Below, one piece after another: positions 3,309-55,129 of a stretch of DNA of 64,000 bases. Both the position numbers and the translations under genes were made by a program. Below the pieces are notes generated by a model. That model searched no databases. It was not told the origin of the DNA and saw only the letters and a list, made by a program, of their open reading frames with translations. The stretch lies in the sequence record OK040170.1; one strand, written 5' to 3'. Within the stretch, counting starts at the first letter, position 1. Each line of letters opens with the position of its first letter.

Positions 3309-4073
3309 ATGACCATTAACAAATTCCCTCATGAAGTCTCTGAGAAATTGGGCTGGTACGTTTATACTCTCACTAATCCTCTGAATAATGACGAGGTGTT
3401 CTACGTTGGTAAGGGTTGTGGTAATCGCATCTTCGCTCATGTTAATGATCAACTCAAAACCAAGGATGCGAGTAACCTTTCACTTAAACTGGGAACGATT
3501 AAAGAGATTCATGAATCCGGTCTGGAAGTAGGTCACAACATCGTGGCCTACAACTTAAGGGATGAGACAGAAGCCTTTGCCGTAGAATCTGCTTTGATTA
3601 ACGTCTACCCTAACTTGACAAATGAAGTCAAAGGACACGGTAATAAATTCGGCGTACTTACTGTCGAAGAAGCCATTGTCCAATACGGGGCTGAGGAAGC
3701 TGTTCTGGAAGATGACGTCTTGATCATTAAGATCAATGACAGTTACGATAAGATGAGTACTTACGACGCAGTACGTTTCTCCTGGCCAGTAGTCGTTAGT
3801 CGCGCTAGTAGAGCTAAAGCTGTGCTGGCTGTTGCTAACGGTATCGTACGTGGCGTTTTTGAAGTAGACAGTTGGAAACCTGCTACTCCAGAAAACTTCC
3901 CTGAGATGTATCGTTTAAGAACCATCGAAGATGTTGCTAAAGAAAGCAAAAGAAAAGCTTTCTCAGGAAGGGTGGCTTCAGAGCCACTCTATTCCCGTTA
4001 CATTAACAAAAAGCTCCCTGCTGAATATTCCTTAAAAGGTTCTCAGCAATCAATCCGTTACAATTTCAAATAA
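3309..4073 (+). CDS. LEM-3-like GIY-YIG domain nuclease
   Basis: YVYTLTNP...FYVGKGCGNRIFAH and EAFAVESALI match the GIY-YIG core (two Tyr motifs, Arg, His, catalytic Glu). Confidence 0.8.
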   Translation: MTINKFPHEVSEKLGWYVYTLTNPLNNDEVFYVGKGCGNRIFAHVNDQLKTKDASNLSLKLGTIKEIHESGLEVGHNIVAYNLRDETEAFAVESALINVYPNLTNEVKGHGNKFGVLTVEEAIVQYGAEEAVLEDDVLIIKINDSYDKMSTYDAVRFSWPVVVSRASRAKAVLAVANGIVRGVFEVDSWKPATPENFPEMYRLRTIEDVAKESKRKAFSGRVASEPLYSRYINKKLPAEYSLKGSQQSIRYNFK

Positions 4074-4083
4074 GGAAATCATC

Positions 4084-4434
4084 ATGCATACTGTAAACGC
4101 CATTATCCGTACTATCGAAACTAACCCAGAGTTTGACAAAATCGCAGCTCCGTTCAACCGTACCTTGGTTCTGGCTCGTAAAGGTAAAGTCAAAAAGATG
4201 ATCAAAATGATCGAGTCTTTGGCTAACGAGCCTACTGAGCTGTATGTCATCAGAATCGAAACTGGCGATAGCTGGTTCAAAACTCCGGTCGGTGGTGATC
4301 ACTGGATCCTTAGCCGGACTGAAATCTCTCGCCTGCGTGCCGCACTTTATCGTGCGATCGAAAAGGACAGCTATCCGGTCAAGTTGAGTCGTACCATCGT
4401 TCAGTATCAGCCGATCGTAAACTTCGTAAAATAA
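4084..4434 (+). CDS. hypothetical protein (116 aa)
   Basis: AAGGA SD; C-terminus resembles the next gene. Confidence 0.75.
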   Translation: MHTVNAIIRTIETNPEFDKIAAPFNRTLVLARKGKVKKMIKMIESLANEPTELYVIRIETGDSWFKTPVGGDHWILSRTEISRLRAALYRAIEKDSYPVKLSRTIVQYQPIVNFVK

Positions 4435-24578: not shown

Positions 24579-25856
24579 TTGGGTGTTTATCTGTTAAATC
24601 CGGACTATGACAGGGATATCGCAGCTCTGCCTCGTCCTCCAATTATCCTCAATGATATCGACCCGGCGCATTATGAAGGTACTGATCCAGTCAAAGAACT
24701 GACCATGACCGAATATAGCGACGACTTCATTGAGACATTACCGGCGTGTGAGTGTGGCCACACCCATGGTCGGTATAATTCATCGAACGACCCAAGTATC
24801 CCTAACACGGTATGTCCGAAATGTCAGACTGAAGTGATGAGCCCAATCGATCGAGGGTTTAAATCTTCTGTGTGGCTGAGAGCACCTAACGGTGTTCGTG
24901 CGTTCATCCGTATCAATGCGTTGGTCATGTTGCTGAAGAACTTCACCCAGGAGAACTTCTCGGCAATTGAATGGCTCTGTAACACCAAATATAAGCCAAC
25001 CAACGATACCAGTGCCACGTTCCGTCGGTTCAAAGAACTGAACATCCCTCGTGGTTATAATCACTTTATCGAGAACTTCGATGACATCCTGGGCGCGATG
25101 GTAGATAGTAAGATATTCAAGCCATCTGCTAACCGTAACGATGCGTTGGTGTATTTTGATAAGTTCAGGGATCTCCTGTTCCCAACCGTCCTCCCGCTGC
25201 CATCTCGCCGGTCTATCATCACGGAGCTTAGTAACAAAACTCGCTTCTGTGCTGAAGGCTATGCAGATGTCGTCGATGCTGCACGAGCTATTTATAGCTT
25301 GGTCGGTAAAGATGAACCGCGTTATCAAGTGACTAAGGAATATCACGTATTCCGAGCACTGATGATGTTGGTGAAGTATCGGGAATATATCGACAAGAAC
25401 ATCCTGGGTAAGAAAGAAGGCTGGTTCCGTAAACAGATCTATGGATCTCGTACCGGGCCAACTTATCGTGGCGTAGTAACGTCTATCGCGGGATCTCACG
25501 ACTATGAAGAAATGCATATGCCGTGGGGGATTGCGTTAGGGGTTTATCACACCCACTTGATCGGAAAGTTAGTTCGTCGCGGATTCACCATCCAAGACTC
25601 TGAGGATCTACTGATCTCTTCAGTAGGGCGTTATAATCCGCTGATCTCCACTCTGCTGGATGAGCTGATTGACGAATCTCCGTTTACGACAATTAGTGGT
25701 AAACGTGGACTGCCTCAGTTGCTGGGTCGAAATCCAACGTTGAACTTACGTTCGATTCAGAACCTGTTTGTCACCAAAATCAAAAGGGACGTGCACGACA
25801 ATACTATCGGCCTATCGCTGCTAGTGCTGAAGGCTCCGAACTGTGACTTCGACGGT
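24579..25856 (+). CDS. non-virion RNA polymerase beta' N-terminal subunit (phiKZ gp55-like), exon 1
   Basis: Zn-binding CECG...CPKC, RKQIYGSR, GRNPTL and NCDFDG; the catalytic motif is cut after Gly. Confidence 0.88.
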
Positions 25857-26152
25857 AGAAGTAACCCAACTAAGTTGCCGTCTTAAAACTCCTTTAACTG
25901 CTGGGAACTCTTGCTAGGTAGATTGGCTACAACGTAACTGGAAACGGTAAGCGTGAATGCTTGAAAACAATCTAATAGAGACAATCAGCATCCAAGCTCC
26001 TGTAAAATGGAGAAGGTTCAACGACTATCGAAAGCACGTAACACGGATGTGGTAAACGTAGTGAGTAGAGTAGGGGAAACCCGAAACGGGGAGCACTTGA
26101 ACGATTCAAGTGAAGATATAGTCTGTTAAGTACTCGGTGCATTTAGCCGAGG
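25857..26152 (+). mobile_element. group I intron (phage IA2-like), 296 nt, no endonuclease ORF
   Basis: P AACTGCTGGGAA (25896), Q AATCAGCA (25983), R TTCAACGACTAT (26017), S AAGATATAGTCT (26113); P1 GACGGT/GCCGTC with U-G at the 5' site; P9 CTCGG/CCGAG then terminal G26152. Confidence 0.9.
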
Positions 26153-30328: not shown

Positions 30329-30405
30329 TAGTATTTTACGCCGGCTCTAGTGATATGAGCCAACTTACAAATTTATCTTCAAACCGAATATTAAGGGTTT
30401 ACCAA

Positions 30406-31191
30406 ATGGCAGAACAAAAGTCTTATAGCCTGGGTCGTCGAGAACGTGCACTCGATGATTGGGCATGTCGCCTGTTTGCTCCGGCTACTCAAAACAGCGA
30501 TGGTAAAGAACCATTCCTGTTTATTGATTTCCGCTACAATCATCAGGATAAAGTTCGCGATATCCAGATGGGTGTAAACCTGCGCAAAGGCGGTAAAGAC
30601 GGTAAGATCGACTTCTTCCCTAACCTGGTTCAGTTCAACGCGCTGTGCGAAGCTATCCGCATGGTAGCTAACGACCAGATCCCTGACGGTATGGTCAAAA
30701 TGGAAGTCATGACCACGTTCATGTTCGGTAAGAAACTGGATCGTCCAGAAACCGAATTCATGATCGTGGTCGGGAAAGACCAGGAAGGCGTATTCATCGG
30801 GATCACTCAGAAAGGCCGCGATAACGTGAAGTTCTACTTCACCGGTCCGCGCATGACCGTTCTGCGCAACCGTGCAGGTGAAGTGTTCGATAACTCGGTC
30901 ACCAGCAAAATCTTCGCGATCGCTCGTGCGAACATGTGGGAAAGCCACATCAACTATCTGATGCAAAGCGCATACCTGGACGCTCCTGAACTGGAGCAAG
31001 CAAAGGAAGCGAAGAAACGCGCCAACCAAGCACGCTTCAGCCAGAACCAAGGTCGCCAGGGCGGCGGCGGAAATTCATGGGGCGGAAATGGTGGTGGTAA
31101 CGGCGGCGGCAATAGCTGGGGCGGCGGTCAGCAACAGCAACAATCTGCTCCTCCAGCCGATGGCGGCTTCGATAACGACATTCCGTGGTAA
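30406..31191 (+). CDS. putative ssDNA-binding protein with SSB-like tail
   Basis: Gly/Gln/Asn-rich linker ending GGFDNDIPW, like bacterial SSB DFDDDIPF; start ATG 30406. Confidence 0.55.
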   Translation: MAEQKSYSLGRRERALDDWACRLFAPATQNSDGKEPFLFIDFRYNHQDKVRDIQMGVNLRKGGKDGKIDFFPNLVQFNALCEAIRMVANDQIPDGMVKMEVMTTFMFGKKLDRPETEFMIVVGKDQEGVFIGITQKGRDNVKFYFTGPRMTVLRNRAGEVFDNSVTSKIFAIARANMWESHINYLMQSAYLDAPELEQAKEAKKRANQARFSQNQGRQGGGGNSWGGNGGGNGGGNSWGGGQQQQQSAPPADGGFDNDIPW

Positions 31192-53356: not shown

Positions 53357-53515
53357 ATGCCTAGTACCAGTAAGAAACAAGAGCAATTCATGGCAGTCGC
53401 TGCCCACGACAAAGAGTTCGCTGAAGAAGCAGGCATTCCCCAGAAGGTTGCTAAAGAATTCCATAACGCCGATAAGCGTAAGAAGAACAAGAAAGCGATC
53501 TTGGCAAAACGTTGA
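53357..53515 (+). CDS. small phage protein (52 aa)
   Basis: GAGGA SD; MPSTSKKQEQFMAVAAHDKEFAEEAGIPQKVAKEFHNADKRKKNKKAILAKR*. Not in the ORF track. Confidence 0.75.
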   Translation: MPSTSKKQEQFMAVAAHDKEFAEEAGIPQKVAKEFHNADKRKKNKKAILAKR

Positions 53516-53526
53516 TTTAGATCTTT

Positions 53527-53550
53527 TTTTACGCAACAAGTTTAAGTATG
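53527..53550 (+). promoter_or_regulatory. TTTTAC-N14-TATG promoter-like element ahead of the RNA array
   Basis: TTTTACGCAACAAGTTTAAGTATG; same spacing as at 5661, 13112, 30334 and 47200. Confidence 0.6.
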
Positions 53551-53661
53551 TAGAAGCTGCATCAAGTAATCATTTAGTTCAATTAACTCCAGGGTCGATT
53601 GTCGGTAACTAAGTGAGATTCAGCTACAAGCGGGGATGGATCCCCACTAAGTATTGGAGAG

Positions 53662-53758
53662 CTTTAAGGGTACGATCTCAATCGTCCGGGTTGTGGAACA
53701 ACTTCCGCACACTAGTGCGTTGGTTTAGGGTTCGACTCCCTACCGGAATGCCTTAAAG
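53662..53758 (+). ncRNA. tRNA-like cloverleaf on an extended stem
   Basis: T-arm TAGGG-TTCGACT-CCCTA, D-like GTTG/CAAC, CGCAC-acta-GTGCG, TCCGG/CCGGA, outer CTTTAAGG/CCTTAAAG; no CCA. Confidence 0.55.
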
Positions 53759-53830
53759 GTAGCGCATGATAAATGCGAGCAACTAACACGAGGCGACATT
53801 ACGCGCCTACTCCAATCAAGACGAATTCCT

Positions 53831-53915
53831 GGTAGGTTACTCAAGCGGCAACGAGAACAGACTGTAAATCTGTTGCCTTCGGGCTTCGATGGTTCGAGTC
53901 CATCACCTACCACCA
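53831..53915 (+). tRNA. tRNA-Tyr(GTA)
   Basis: GGTAGGT/ACCTACC acceptor, ACAGA-ctGTAaa-TCTGT, long variable arm, GATGG-TTCGAGT-CCATC, encoded CCA. Confidence 0.95.
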
Positions 53916-53922
53916 AAACAAT

Positions 53923-54001
53923 GAACCGAGTAGCTCAACTGAATAGAGCACCGTCCCGCTAAGACGGAGGTTAGAGGTTTAAGTCCTTTCTCTGGTTCCC
54001 A
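53923..54001 (+). tRNA. atypical tRNA (GCT anticodon in a short-variable-arm body)
   Basis: TAGCTC...GAGC D arm, CCGTC-ccGCTaa-GACGG, AGAGG-TTTAAGT-CCTTT, bulged acceptor, CCA. Confidence 0.65.
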
Positions 54002-54007
54002 AACAAC

Positions 54008-54171
54008 GACACTGATCTCAAGAAGATCGGCAGCCTTACCCAACCGTGTCGCGGCGATCGCCAGCAATCGGTATTTAGTGCACGGTACGTAGACAAGCCT
54101 TTGAGCGAAGTTCCGCGTCCCGAGCCGTCGGCAGCCCATAAGCCTCAGTGAAATTCTGAGGGGTGTCACCA
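54008..54171 (+). ncRNA. 164-nt tRNA-like RNA with large central insertion and CCA end
   Basis: GACACT/GGTGTC-A-CCA, GATCT-caaga-AGATC, CCTCAG-tgaaatt-CTGAGG. Confidence 0.6.
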
Positions 54172-54175
54172 AAGA

Positions 54176-54241
54176 TGTCCTCATTGCAGAGGGAGGTTGA
54201 TTGTAGTCAGCCTGTTGTGAAACGAATCTGCAGTGGGGACG
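54176..54241 (+). ncRNA. three-way-junction structured RNA
   Basis: 14-bp GTCCTCATTGCAGA/TCTGCAGTGGGGAC enclosing AGGTTGA/TCAGCCT and a small hairpin. Confidence 0.5.
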
Positions 54242-54261
54242 CCTTCCCTTTCTAAAGTTTT

Positions 54262-54350
54262 ATCGAGATAGTCTACTTAAACCTAGTGAGGAATTCGACG
54301 GCGGATACGTCCGTAAGACTGCGTAGGTTCGATCCCTACTCTCGATCCGA
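54262..54350 (+). ncRNA. tRNA-like-domain RNA (acceptor plus T arm, no canonical D arm)
   Basis: ATCGAGA/TCTCGAT, AGTCT/AGACT helix, GTAGG-TTCGATC-CCTAC. Confidence 0.6.
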
Positions 54351-54363
54351 TTTAAAAGAACAA

Positions 54364-54490
54364 TGACGCCTGCACGTAAAAAGCAAACTGCGCCAGCTGG
54401 GCGCGGTGGGGGCTAAGTGCCATGAACCATGCGGCGAGATCGCGGCGAAGGTATAAGATAGCCAGGTGCGATTCCTGGGGGCGTCACCCA
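54364..54490 (+). ncRNA. 127-nt tRNA-like RNA with expanded variable region and CCA end
   Basis: TGACGCCT/GGGCGTCA-C-CCA, ACTGCGCC-agctg-GGCGCGGT, CCAGG-tgcgatt-CCTGG. Confidence 0.6.
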
Positions 54491-54492
54491 AT

Positions 54493-54590
54493 TAGGTACG
54501 TAAGTCTCAAGTGGCCGCATTCATCTGCCCGCATTCATCTGCCCGCTGCCTAAAGACTTTGTGGAATGGATTCCGCGTACCTAAAAACCA
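54493..54590 (+). ncRNA. tRNA-like-domain RNA carrying a 14-nt tandem repeat
   Basis: TAGGTAC/GTACCTA, AAGTCT/AGACTT, GTGGA-atggat-TCCGC; CCGCATTCATCTGC x2 at 54515-54542. Confidence 0.55.
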
Positions 54591-54619: not shown

Positions 54620-55129
54620 ATGACTATCCTTAATCGCGATATGATCATGCAAGAACTCTTAAACTCAATAGATCCTGATGCAGGCCCATGTCTTGGGCTT
54701 AGCAGGGAAAAAGAGTTAGCCGAAATTTATACGCTAGGATTCAAGGCACCTCGCCAAACGGGGTCTACGTATTGGCTTATCGAAAAACTCATTGAGGATC
54801 GTAACTCAATTGTAATTTTGATTAATAGCGACTTTAAAGAACACTTCCTAGCGGATGTTGAGAAATACCCTAAAGTCATTTTCGACAAATGTGTTCAATA
54901 TGGACCATCTGTTGAACGAGGTATTCTTAATGGCGATAAAGACAATATAGTCGATCGCTGTTTCACTGCCAGGGAATTCCTAAACGCCGACCTAGAACGT
55001 CACCGCTACGCCACATCGGTCTTCTTTGATGGCGCGTCGACGATTGCTAGTAAGATTAATCTTAATGCGTATTACCGAAAGTTGGCCAAAGAAGTAAAAG
55101 GTTATCCGGTTACTTGGCTGATTAACTAA
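54620..55129 (+). CDS. hypothetical protein with degenerate P-loop-like motif
   Basis: APRQTGST resembles a terminase-type Walker A; only 169 aa. Confidence 0.55.
   Translation: MTILNRDMIMQELLNSIDPDAGPCLGLSREKELAEIYTLGFKAPRQTGSTYWLIEKLIEDRNSIVILINSDFKEHFLADVEKYPKVIFDKCVQYGPSVERGILNGDKDNIVDRCFTAREFLNADLERHRYATSVFFDGASTIASKINLNAYYRKLAKEVKGYPVTWLIN

Follow-up and report, generated by a model that had tools for sequence, protein, structure and literature searches.

Serratia phage BUCT660 (OK040170.1; genus Moabitevirus, 272.7 kb) carries an array of closely packed structured RNA units at positions 53527–54590 on the + strand of the 64,000-nucleotide (nt) stretch analyzed here, hereafter the window. 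We propose, at a probability of roughly 0.6, that this array is a transfer RNA (tRNA)-type operon whose main products are tRNA-shaped non-coding RNAs rather than decoding tRNAs. The units form conserved structures, and two of them, designated B and G, recur in other phages in association with tRNA arrays and with helices that covary. Unit B belongs to a family of structured RNAs that is widespread among phages and missing from Rfam 15.

A tRNA array in which few units are tRNAs

The array lies between coding sequences (CDSs) of 52 amino acids (aa; 53357–53515) and 169 aa (54620–55129), and the BUCT660 GenBank record lists only a tRNA-Tyr-GTA and a tRNA-Ser-GCT between them; the genome paper of the related phage Moabite counts two tRNA genes in the whole genome (PMC6639629). 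Reading and folding the sequence distinguished nine structured units, A to I, within 1.05 kb, all on the + strand and separated by spacers of 4–20 nt (Table 1). They comprise a tRNA-Tyr (C), a defective near-cloverleaf tRNA(GCU) (D), four or five RNAs in which an acceptor stem and a T arm surround a foreign body, and two hairpin domains; non-tRNA units outnumber tRNAs by about 7 to 2. An earlier note on this DNA had described about 1 kb free of open reading frames (ORFs) and holding at least seven structured units. This description stands: no protein gene is annotated there, the ORFs inside 53527–54590 are short, unannotated and at most 93 aa long, and the number of units has risen to nine.

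ARAGORN calls one tRNA in the entire 64 kb, the tRNA-Tyr at 53831–53915; Rfam, at its gathering threshold, returns this gene (53.9 bits) and a second tRNA at 53924–53997 (41.4 bits). With membership in the tRNA family RF00005 defined as a score at the gathering threshold of 29 bits plus a full cloverleaf, units C and D alone are members, and the B core and units E, G, H and I give no RF00005 match at E ≤ 10. At the same permissive setting, the B core (53683–53750) yields a single sub-threshold, mascRNA-like match (30.1 bits, E = 9e-4). The claim in the earlier note that only tRNA-Tyr is canonical proves slightly overstated: D is indeed defective and ARAGORN calls the Tyr gene alone, but D passes the Rfam threshold and is the tRNA-Ser-GCT of the GenBank record. 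Its count of five further units with an acceptor-like stem abutting a T-arm-like hairpin (5–6 base pairs (bp), 7-nt loop) is borne out by the B core, D, E, G and H. The encoded CCA that it had seen on altered units is likewise present, 3′ of D (C-CCA) and E (A-CCA) in addition to tRNA-Tyr, and also of H if the acceptor stem of that unit is taken as 8 bp.

All four window matches to the T-loop motif GGTTYRANYCC fall inside 53729–54336 on the + strand, against 0.93 expected. A scan for a 5-bp stem, a 7-nt loop and a 6-bp acceptor found about one match per kb across the window; so permissive a scan has no statistical value, and we used comparative evidence instead. The window proteins neighboring the array include none with a tRNA-related Pfam or PHROG function. 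Two small features recur within the array. The spacers ahead of D (53916–53923), E (54002–54007) and H (54354–54364) share AACAAYG, a candidate processing signal whose last base adjoins or coincides with the 5′ end predicted for the mature RNA, and similar UGGA-loop hairpins stand near both array ends (GGGGA-UGGA-UCCCC, 53632–53645; GUGGAA-UGGA-UUCCGC, 54561–54576).

Unit B belongs to a widespread family of four-way-junction RNAs

Going beyond the earlier note, comparison with homologs reveals unit B as a 158-nt four-way junction of which the tRNA-like part is only an insert. In BUCT660, P1 (GGAG/CUCC) closes the unit, P2 (CUUUAAGG/CCUUAAAG) encloses the tRNA-like insert at 53683–53750, and the P3 hairpin is followed by the invariant strand AGCAACUAACACGA and by P4 (GGCGA..GCGCC). 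The layout common to all real members of the family starts with a 4-bp P1 (NGAG/CUCN), AG and an 8-bp P2 around a variable insert of 36–175 nt; it continues with GNAG, the P3 hairpin (often with a GNRA loop), the near-invariant strand AGNAANUAACACGA, P4 (GGCGN-loop-NCGCC), UA and the return strand of P1. Four helices meet in a cloverleaf-like junction whose 14-nt joining strand is invariant, and the insert occupies the arm at the D-arm position. The insert nearly always contains a T-loop-type hairpin and often an entire tRNA-like domain; in M7 it is called as a tRNA by ARAGORN, with a 6-nt anticodon loop, and in L023 its order is permuted, the T arm preceding the D arm.

A blastn search of GenBank detected B at 73–79% identity in Erwinia Machinavirus phages and in about 40 Ounavirinae-type phages (84–92 kb), and the 3′ part of B alone in several other genera. 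Where these homologs carry a label at all, it is ‘tRNA-OTHER’, ‘tRNA-Undet’ or tRNA-Gln. A pattern search with the most conserved stretch of B returned 40 IMG/VR and 8 GTDB contigs, among which 36 loci are real members by covariance model and the others chance matches. The model (R1), built from 25 members over 149 positions, has 38 matches of 35–124 bits among the collected loci; its single match in the window, at 53656–53813, spans model positions 1–149 of 149 and scores 112.9 bits (E = 8e-27).

Covariation in the family is strong. In the model-fitted alignment, with which an anchor-based extraction agrees, 99.4% of cells are paired, as opposed to 78.3% in shuffled controls (0 of 500 shuffles reach the observed value), and double-sided changes affect 129 cells versus 36 in shuffles. 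The covariation score is 0.482, falling to 0.099 on shuffling and to at most 0.075 when the partners are slid; in P2, three or four Watson–Crick types occur at 6 of the 8 pairs. No conserved ORF runs through the family, every frame being interrupted by stops in at least 25 of 31 members. Rfam 15 has nothing overlapping B in the window (E ≤ 10), at 10 other loci (E ≤ 1) or at 20 loci (gathering threshold). Our literature search with the motif sequence returned nothing relevant, and B or G may be among the unnamed candidates of a viral structured-RNA survey.

Members of the family keep company with tRNAs. For 21 of the 31 distinct members the nearest tRNA is no more than 300 nt away, often at 5–12 nt, and all tRNAs within 1.5 kb are on the same strand; the other 10 have no tRNA call in the surrounding DNA examined. 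No protein family recurs beside B in 4 or more of 28 neighborhoods. Copies on bacterial chromosomes adjoin tRNA-Pro in Bosea (L066, 7861–7993), where terminase, portal, protease and capsid genes lie downstream in a prophage-like arrangement, and in Limoniibacter (L065, 5043–5178), where an HNH endonuclease gene is next to the unit. Phages of Gamma- and Alphaproteobacteria keep the invariant strand, as does a contig binned with an Acidobacteriaceae metagenome-assembled genome. In Moabite and Yaphecito, the inner T arm has lost its 3′ half to a 12-nt deletion (L002, ~1845–1860), and the outer four-way scaffold is intact.

Unit G recurs in jumbo and T4-like phages

Unit G, which lacks an anticodon loop, pairs a 7-bp acceptor stem (AUCGAGA../..UCUCGAU) with one long arm that bears a UACG-capped hairpin and with a canonical T arm (GUAGG-UUCGAUC-CCUAC). 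Its homologs reach 86–87% identity in Klebsiella jumbo phage N1M2 and Shewanella phage SXP01, and about 82% over the core in some 70 T4-like Straboviridae, such as JD18 and STML-198; this presence in T4-like phages, too, goes beyond the earlier note. Scans of IMG/VR and metagenomes added few further contigs, mostly of about 160–170 kb. The G loci that we examined adjoin tRNA genes, no feature is annotated under G among the matches listed, and G has no match in Rfam 15.

The family is defined by an invariant body of about 40 nt, UUAAACYUAGUGAGG(N)AAUUC..GGCRGA-UACG-UCYGU, to which the BUCT660 unit conforms. Compensatory changes occur in every helix: GUCU/AGAC gives way to GUUGC/GCAAC and CGGA-UACG-UCCG to CAGA-UACG-UCUG, with further changes in the T stem (GUAGG/CCUAC to GCAGG/CUUGC or AUAAGG/CCUUAU) and in the acceptor (AUCGAGA/UCUCGAU to AUCGGGA/UCCCGAU). 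RNAalifold gave a poor consensus because MAFFT had shifted one arm by one base, and single-sequence folds were used instead; independent minimum free energy (MFE) folds have the same Y architecture in 7 of 8 sequences.

The tRNAs of the array are defective or dispensable

We took as canonical a decoding tRNA with a 7-nt anticodon loop containing U33, a D-loop GG, a regular 7-bp acceptor stem and a class fitting its anticodon. Unit C has all of these features. Unit D departs from them through C33, a D loop without GG, an acceptor stem with a bulged U and a Ser anticodon with a 5-nt variable loop in place of a long variable arm; its discriminator is a C, followed by CCA. Bacterial seryl-tRNA synthetase (SerRS) requires a long variable arm, and a class-I body with a Ser anticodon should not suit it. 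ARAGORN calls D in relatives and misses it in BUCT660. BUCT660, ParM-25 and Moabite have a C at position 33, Kodama, Haymo and Totoro a U, and D shows T-stem covariation among the relatives.

Two alleles of tRNA-Tyr exist across the relatives. The gene has lost 8 nt of the anticodon loop in Haymo (L005, ~960–975) and is truncated in Totoro by an HNH nuclease gene inserted in the array (L003, 2015–2620), from which it follows that the sole canonical tRNA is dispensable in relatives. Kodama carries, between the Tyr gene and D, an extra tRNA-like gene (L004, ~1020–1118) with canonical D and T arms; its anticodon loop is larger than usual by about 25 nt and includes a hairpin.

Genus-specific units combine constant ends with changing bodies

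For units E, F, H and I, the comparison covers Moabitevirus. Unit E is 99–100% identical in five relatives; in Moabite its acceptor and T-like hairpin are kept, with an A-U to C-G compensation in the T stem, around a different body. Unit H has an internal hairpin (54423–54459) in which more than 9 differences separate two allele groups, both of which pair (ACC.UGC/GCG..GGU versus CUGUUG/CAACAG). Constant ends around changing bodies, as in E and H, fit the idea of a scaffold. All three Moabite substitutions in unit F keep pairing. Unit I is the weakest of the nine (MFE z = 0.1), with little informative variation; a 14-mer, CCGCATTCATCTGC, is tandemly duplicated in it (54515–54542) in BUCT660 only and is present as a single copy in all relatives.

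Table 1. Positions and defining features of the array units in the window
Feature	Position	Strand	Structure and basis
Promoter-like motif TTTTAC-N14-TATG	53527–53550	+	5′ edge of conserved block
Unit A, leader domain	53555–53650	+	Long hairpin 53555–53628, then small GGGGA-UGGA-UCCCC hairpin 53632–53645
Unit B, four-way-junction RNA, 158 nt	53656–53813	+	Covariance model match, covariation
Unit C, tRNA-Tyr(GUA), encoded CCA	53831–53915	+	ARAGORN; Rfam tRNA, 53.9 bits
Unit D, near-cloverleaf class-I tRNA, anticodon GCU	53924–54001	+	Rfam tRNA, 41.4 bits
Unit E, 166-nt RNA	54008–54173	+	Fold; GACACU/GGUGUC acceptor, T-like hairpin CCUCAG-UGAAAUU-CUGAGG, A-CCA, ~125-nt body
Unit F, long imperfect hairpin then U-rich tract	54178–54240	+	MFE z = -4.0, 0/200 shuffles as stable
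Unit G, 86-nt Y-shaped tRNA-like RNA	54262–54347	+	Homologs, compensatory changes, folds
Unit H, ~125-nt RNA	54365–54490	+	7-bp acceptor GACGCCU/GGGCGUC, T-like arm CCAGG-UGCGAUU-CCUGG (54462–54478), tail ACCCA
Unit I	54495–54581	+	GGUACG/CGUACC closing stem, AAGUCU/AGACUU arm, GUGGAA-UGGA-UUCCGC hairpin

The promoter-like motif and the leader unit

The TTTTAC-N14-TATG site, which the earlier note had singled out as promoter-like, has held up: the window has 5 copies of TTTTAC-N12-16-TATG, where 0.75 would be expected, and the four on the + strand all lie between genes, three directly 3′ of the stop codon of the preceding gene. No sigma-70-type site is present on the + strand at the array start. 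This distribution suggests that the motif is a putative phage-specific promoter. In the copy at 30334–30357, the ORF 30355–31191 begins with the ATG of TATG; if the motif is a promoter, this copy hints at a leaderless or very short-leader transcript.

Unit A, which follows the motif, has an MFE z of -2.45. In Totoro, its long hairpin differs by one A-U to G-C double change, two wobble changes and a swap of the CCAG tetraloop for UUCG. An acceptor-like pairing for this unit was considered and rejected. The variants of Moabite and Totoro disrupt it without compensation, and unit A is for that reason a hairpin leader and not a tRNA shape, which adjusts the picture of the array given in the earlier note. 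Elsewhere in the window, a group I catalytic intron lies at 25833–26142 on the + strand (Rfam RF00028, 58 bits; gathering threshold 50).

Conservation of the array among relatives

Against a background of flanking CDSs that are 60–76% identical between Totoro and BUCT660 (36–55% at third codon positions), units B, E, F and G are 100% identical in the two phages. The roughly 45 Totoro differences in 53537–54590 lie nearly all in the hairpins of A, H and I, with structure kept, and the near-identity block coincides exactly with the array edges. Across the relatives, conservation is higher for the non-canonical units than for the true tRNA, tRNA-Tyr being the least stable element of the array. 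On this pattern of substitutions, neutral decay is excluded within the genus. The earlier note had recommended a check for conservation in related jumbo phages; B and G recur outside the genus with compensatory changes, and A, E, F and H have pairing-preserving substitutions within it.

The arrays of Machinavirus phages hold 10–11 intact canonical tRNAs and have tRNA-Tyr and unit B in common with BUCT660. Gaps of 120–280 nt in them (L007, 2824–3028, 3625–3901 and 3979–4214, and their L008 equivalents) contain T-arm non-tRNA units and long hairpins that are unrelated in sequence to E–I. CDSs of equal length, 169 aa, stand 3′ of the Moabitevirus and Machinavirus arrays; they are not homologous, and we dropped them as evidence of synteny.

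A model for the array and its alternatives

Taken together, these observations lead us to a processing model. A single precursor transcript, probably started from the phage-type motif at 53527–53550, would be cut by the host tRNA-maturation machinery, with RNase P acting at the 5′ ends and RNase E and exonucleases, together with the CCA enzyme, at the 3′ ends. The acceptor/T-arm minihelix that six units offer would be the feature recognized by these enzymes. RNase P also cleaves non-tRNA substrates, among them pre-tmRNA, 4.5S RNA and the C4 RNA of phages P1 and P7 (PMC11143913), which makes such processing reasonable. The predicted output is a set of stable small RNAs of 75–170 nt whose function is carried by their bodies; these cargo RNAs would bind conserved tRNA-handling or defense proteins, or mimic their substrates. 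We favor such protein-directed mimicry over base-pairing guides because the invariant parts are single-stranded motifs kept across the phages of unrelated hosts and because no antisense targets emerged in the window. The earlier note had proposed a polycistron that uses tRNA ends as scaffolds. Its structural side, namely selected structures, packing on one strand and constant ends with swapped bodies, is observed here; the co-transcription, processing, stability and protein binding of the units would follow from the model. An extension that we put forward tentatively is that B represents a new, widespread class of tRNA-derived four-way junctions. Such RNAs would be ribozymes, or would serve some universally conserved factor of tRNA handling or anti-phage action as mimic, decoy or cofactor, and the BUCT660 locus would be an operon turned from tRNAs to such effector RNAs. 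Carriers of the class would be tRNA arrays and prophages of Gamma- and Alphaproteobacteria phages and probably of other phyla.

Several points count against the proposal that the array yields functional non-coding RNAs. The near-identity of the block, spacers included, could come from recent cassette exchange, maybe driven by an HNH nuclease, and this explanation is equally good; as cassette exchange could yield the same identity, conservation within the genus is by itself weak evidence. For A, E, F, H and I, no relatives were detected outside Moabitevirus, and the single-sequence folds of E, H and I are no better than shuffles, those of A and F being better. The loss of half of the inner T arm in Moabite indicates that the insert of B may be dispensable, and the antisense argument for protein binding would draw on one 64-kb window alone. 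The putative functional case is carried mainly by the cross-family covariation of B and G and by the compensatory pattern.

That mobility is the whole explanation, with a block spread as a cassette by homing-endonuclease recombination and structures that act in cis as processing or stability elements or as recombination targets, seems to us quite unlikely. Its appeal lies in the BUCT660/Totoro near-identity, which stops exactly at the array edges where the flanks fall to 60–76%, and in the HNH genes inside the Totoro array and beside the Limoniibacter B copy, to which segB in the T4 tRNA cluster may be added. Mobility leaves the covarying helices and the invariant junction strand of B unexplained, however, and fits poorly with the 10 of 31 distinct B members that stand alone and with the retention of the 40-nt invariant body of G across phage families. 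Decay of a larger, Machinavirus-like array, with the non-canonical units as functionless tRNA pseudogenes, is very improbable, even though Machinavirus arrays with 10–11 canonical tRNAs share tRNA-Tyr and unit B, the tRNA-Tyr of Haymo and Totoro is genuinely decayed and B of Moabite has its 12-nt deletion in the inner T arm. Pseudogenes should not be better conserved than the true tRNA, nor should B and G accumulate compensatory changes across unrelated phage families; B also sits within intact Machinavirus arrays, and substitutions in A, F, H and the T stem of E keep pairing. For B and G, pseudogene decay is already largely refuted. Intact tRNAs in relatives had been named in the earlier note as the sign of simple decay, and the Machinavirus phages do have them; they fail to refute the scaffold idea because the same arrays carry B and because compensatory changes are present. 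It is scarcely credible that the region instead encodes small proteins: four CDSs of 40–67 aa are annotated in the homologous DNA of Moabite and BUCT660 has short ORFs, but no CDS is annotated here in BUCT660, Kodama, Haymo, Totoro or ParM-25, every frame of the B family meets stops in at least 25 of 31 members, and substitutions track base pairing, not codons.

Two further readings accept functional RNAs and differ over what they do. The units may be base-pairing guides or sponges for host or phage transcripts, or external-guide-like RNAs for RNase P, with tRNA ends that serve maturation only. Variable cargo in constant handles does resemble specificity modules (the rewritten hairpin of H, the swapped body of E, the duplicated 14-mer of I), and acceptor/T-arm guide RNAs can direct RNase P (PMC11143913). 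We nonetheless regard this as fairly unlikely. Antisense matches of the units to the other 63 kb of the window were no better than those of shuffled units, in a search outside which lay the Serratia genome and the remaining phage genome, and within the window the guide or sponge role suggested in the earlier note is not supported; neither a copy nor a mimic of B or G was found in 5,426 E. coli genomes. The host range over which the invariant strand of B is kept, from phages of Gamma- and Alphaproteobacteria to the Acidobacteriaceae-binned contig, makes a host-specific mRNA target unlikely. The other reading, which we consider unlikely, is that D, and perhaps G, H and E, are unusual chargeable tRNA-like molecules that act in translation, D recoding AGY codons, or as aminoacyl donors or acceptors off the ribosome. 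D does have a full cloverleaf with a 7-nt anticodon loop, U33 in three relatives, a covarying T stem and an encoded CCA, and E and H end in A-CCA and ACCCA beside acceptor stems of 6–8 bp. D, however, joins its Ser anticodon to a short variable arm, lacks the D-loop GG and has C33 in BUCT660, and G, E and H are without any anticodon loop. Charging in the manner of transfer-messenger RNA (tmRNA) is unlikely in view of the absence of a G3:U70 pair and of any ARAGORN tmRNA call.

Significance

Since the 1970s it has been clear that tRNA clusters of phages specify additional stable RNAs that resemble tRNAs, the species 1 and 2 RNAs of T4 being the classic examples. The BUCT660 locus would be a further case of stable RNAs in a tRNA operon, and the phenomenon is more general than the earlier note had thought. 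The array is an extreme form, in that its non-tRNA units exceed the tRNAs and are better preserved in relatives than the canonical tRNA. Its two covarying families can be traced across many phages and give a comparative leverage that the T4 orphan RNAs never had. The main value lies with the B family: it occurs in cultured, tractable phages (Erwinia and Salmonella Ounavirinae, Serratia jumbo phages), which makes the old question about RNAs of tRNA clusters directly testable. Regions of this kind are now left blank or mis-annotated, as small ORFs or ‘tRNA-OTHER’, and covariance models for B and G would mend their annotation.

Comparison with known systems

In logic, the array resembles the mascRNA/MALAT1-type RNAs and the TMER RNAs of gammaherpesviruses, in which tRNA-like signals for RNase P and RNase Z release or stabilize non-coding RNAs. 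Those systems are eukaryotic and share no homology with the array; the mascRNA-like score of the B core, 30 bits, is below the gathering threshold of 42.5. Units E and H recall tmRNA in that an acceptor stem, a T arm and CCA surround a large body. They differ from it in having C-G at position 3:70 and no G3:U70, far smaller bodies and no evident tag ORF, and ARAGORN finds no tmRNA in the 64-kb window. GOLLD is likewise a phage-borne structured RNA of tRNA arrays, though far larger (the Rfam model has 416 positions) and unrelated to B; Rfam finds neither GOLLD nor ROOL in the window. One array of about 20 tRNAs (L036) holds both a GOLLD RNA (1814–2183, - strand, 206 bits) and a B member (4069–4239).

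The YrlA RNAs (RF02553), which are present in some phages (PMC4201824), also embed a tRNA-like domain in a larger scaffold that their 5′ and 3′ ends close, and the L023 member of the B family shares their permuted order of T arm and then D arm. The RF02553 model has no match on B in the window (E ≤ 10) or at 10 loci (E ≤ 1); its sole match in the window, of 24.8 bits (gathering threshold 69), covers tRNA-Tyr and D. Where YrlA has a long Ro-binding stem, the P1 of B has 4 bp; B also lacks the GNCGAA motif and, unlike YrlA, has two extra hairpins and the invariant 14-nt strand. No TROVE domain occurs among the window neighbors, and the 28 neighborhoods of B, whose ORFs had no Pfam scan for TROVE, share no recurrent family.

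The closest precedent is provided by the species 1 and 2 RNAs of T4 (rnaC and rnaD), stable RNAs of 119–139 nt that, like the units described here, lie within a phage tRNA cluster on the tRNA strand and are not tRNAs. Recent work has again confirmed the expression of both RNAs, described as ‘of yet unknown functions’ (PMC9697503). A blastn comparison of all units with the T4 tRNA region detected no homology to rnaC or rnaD, the best match (E = 0.19) covering the T loop only. The likeness is one of architecture: in its fold, rnaC surrounds a foreign body with a closing stem of acceptor type and a canonical T arm, as do units of the BUCT660 array. Relative to T4, this array has its non-tRNA units in the majority, and the scaffold of B is of a different kind, a four-way junction.

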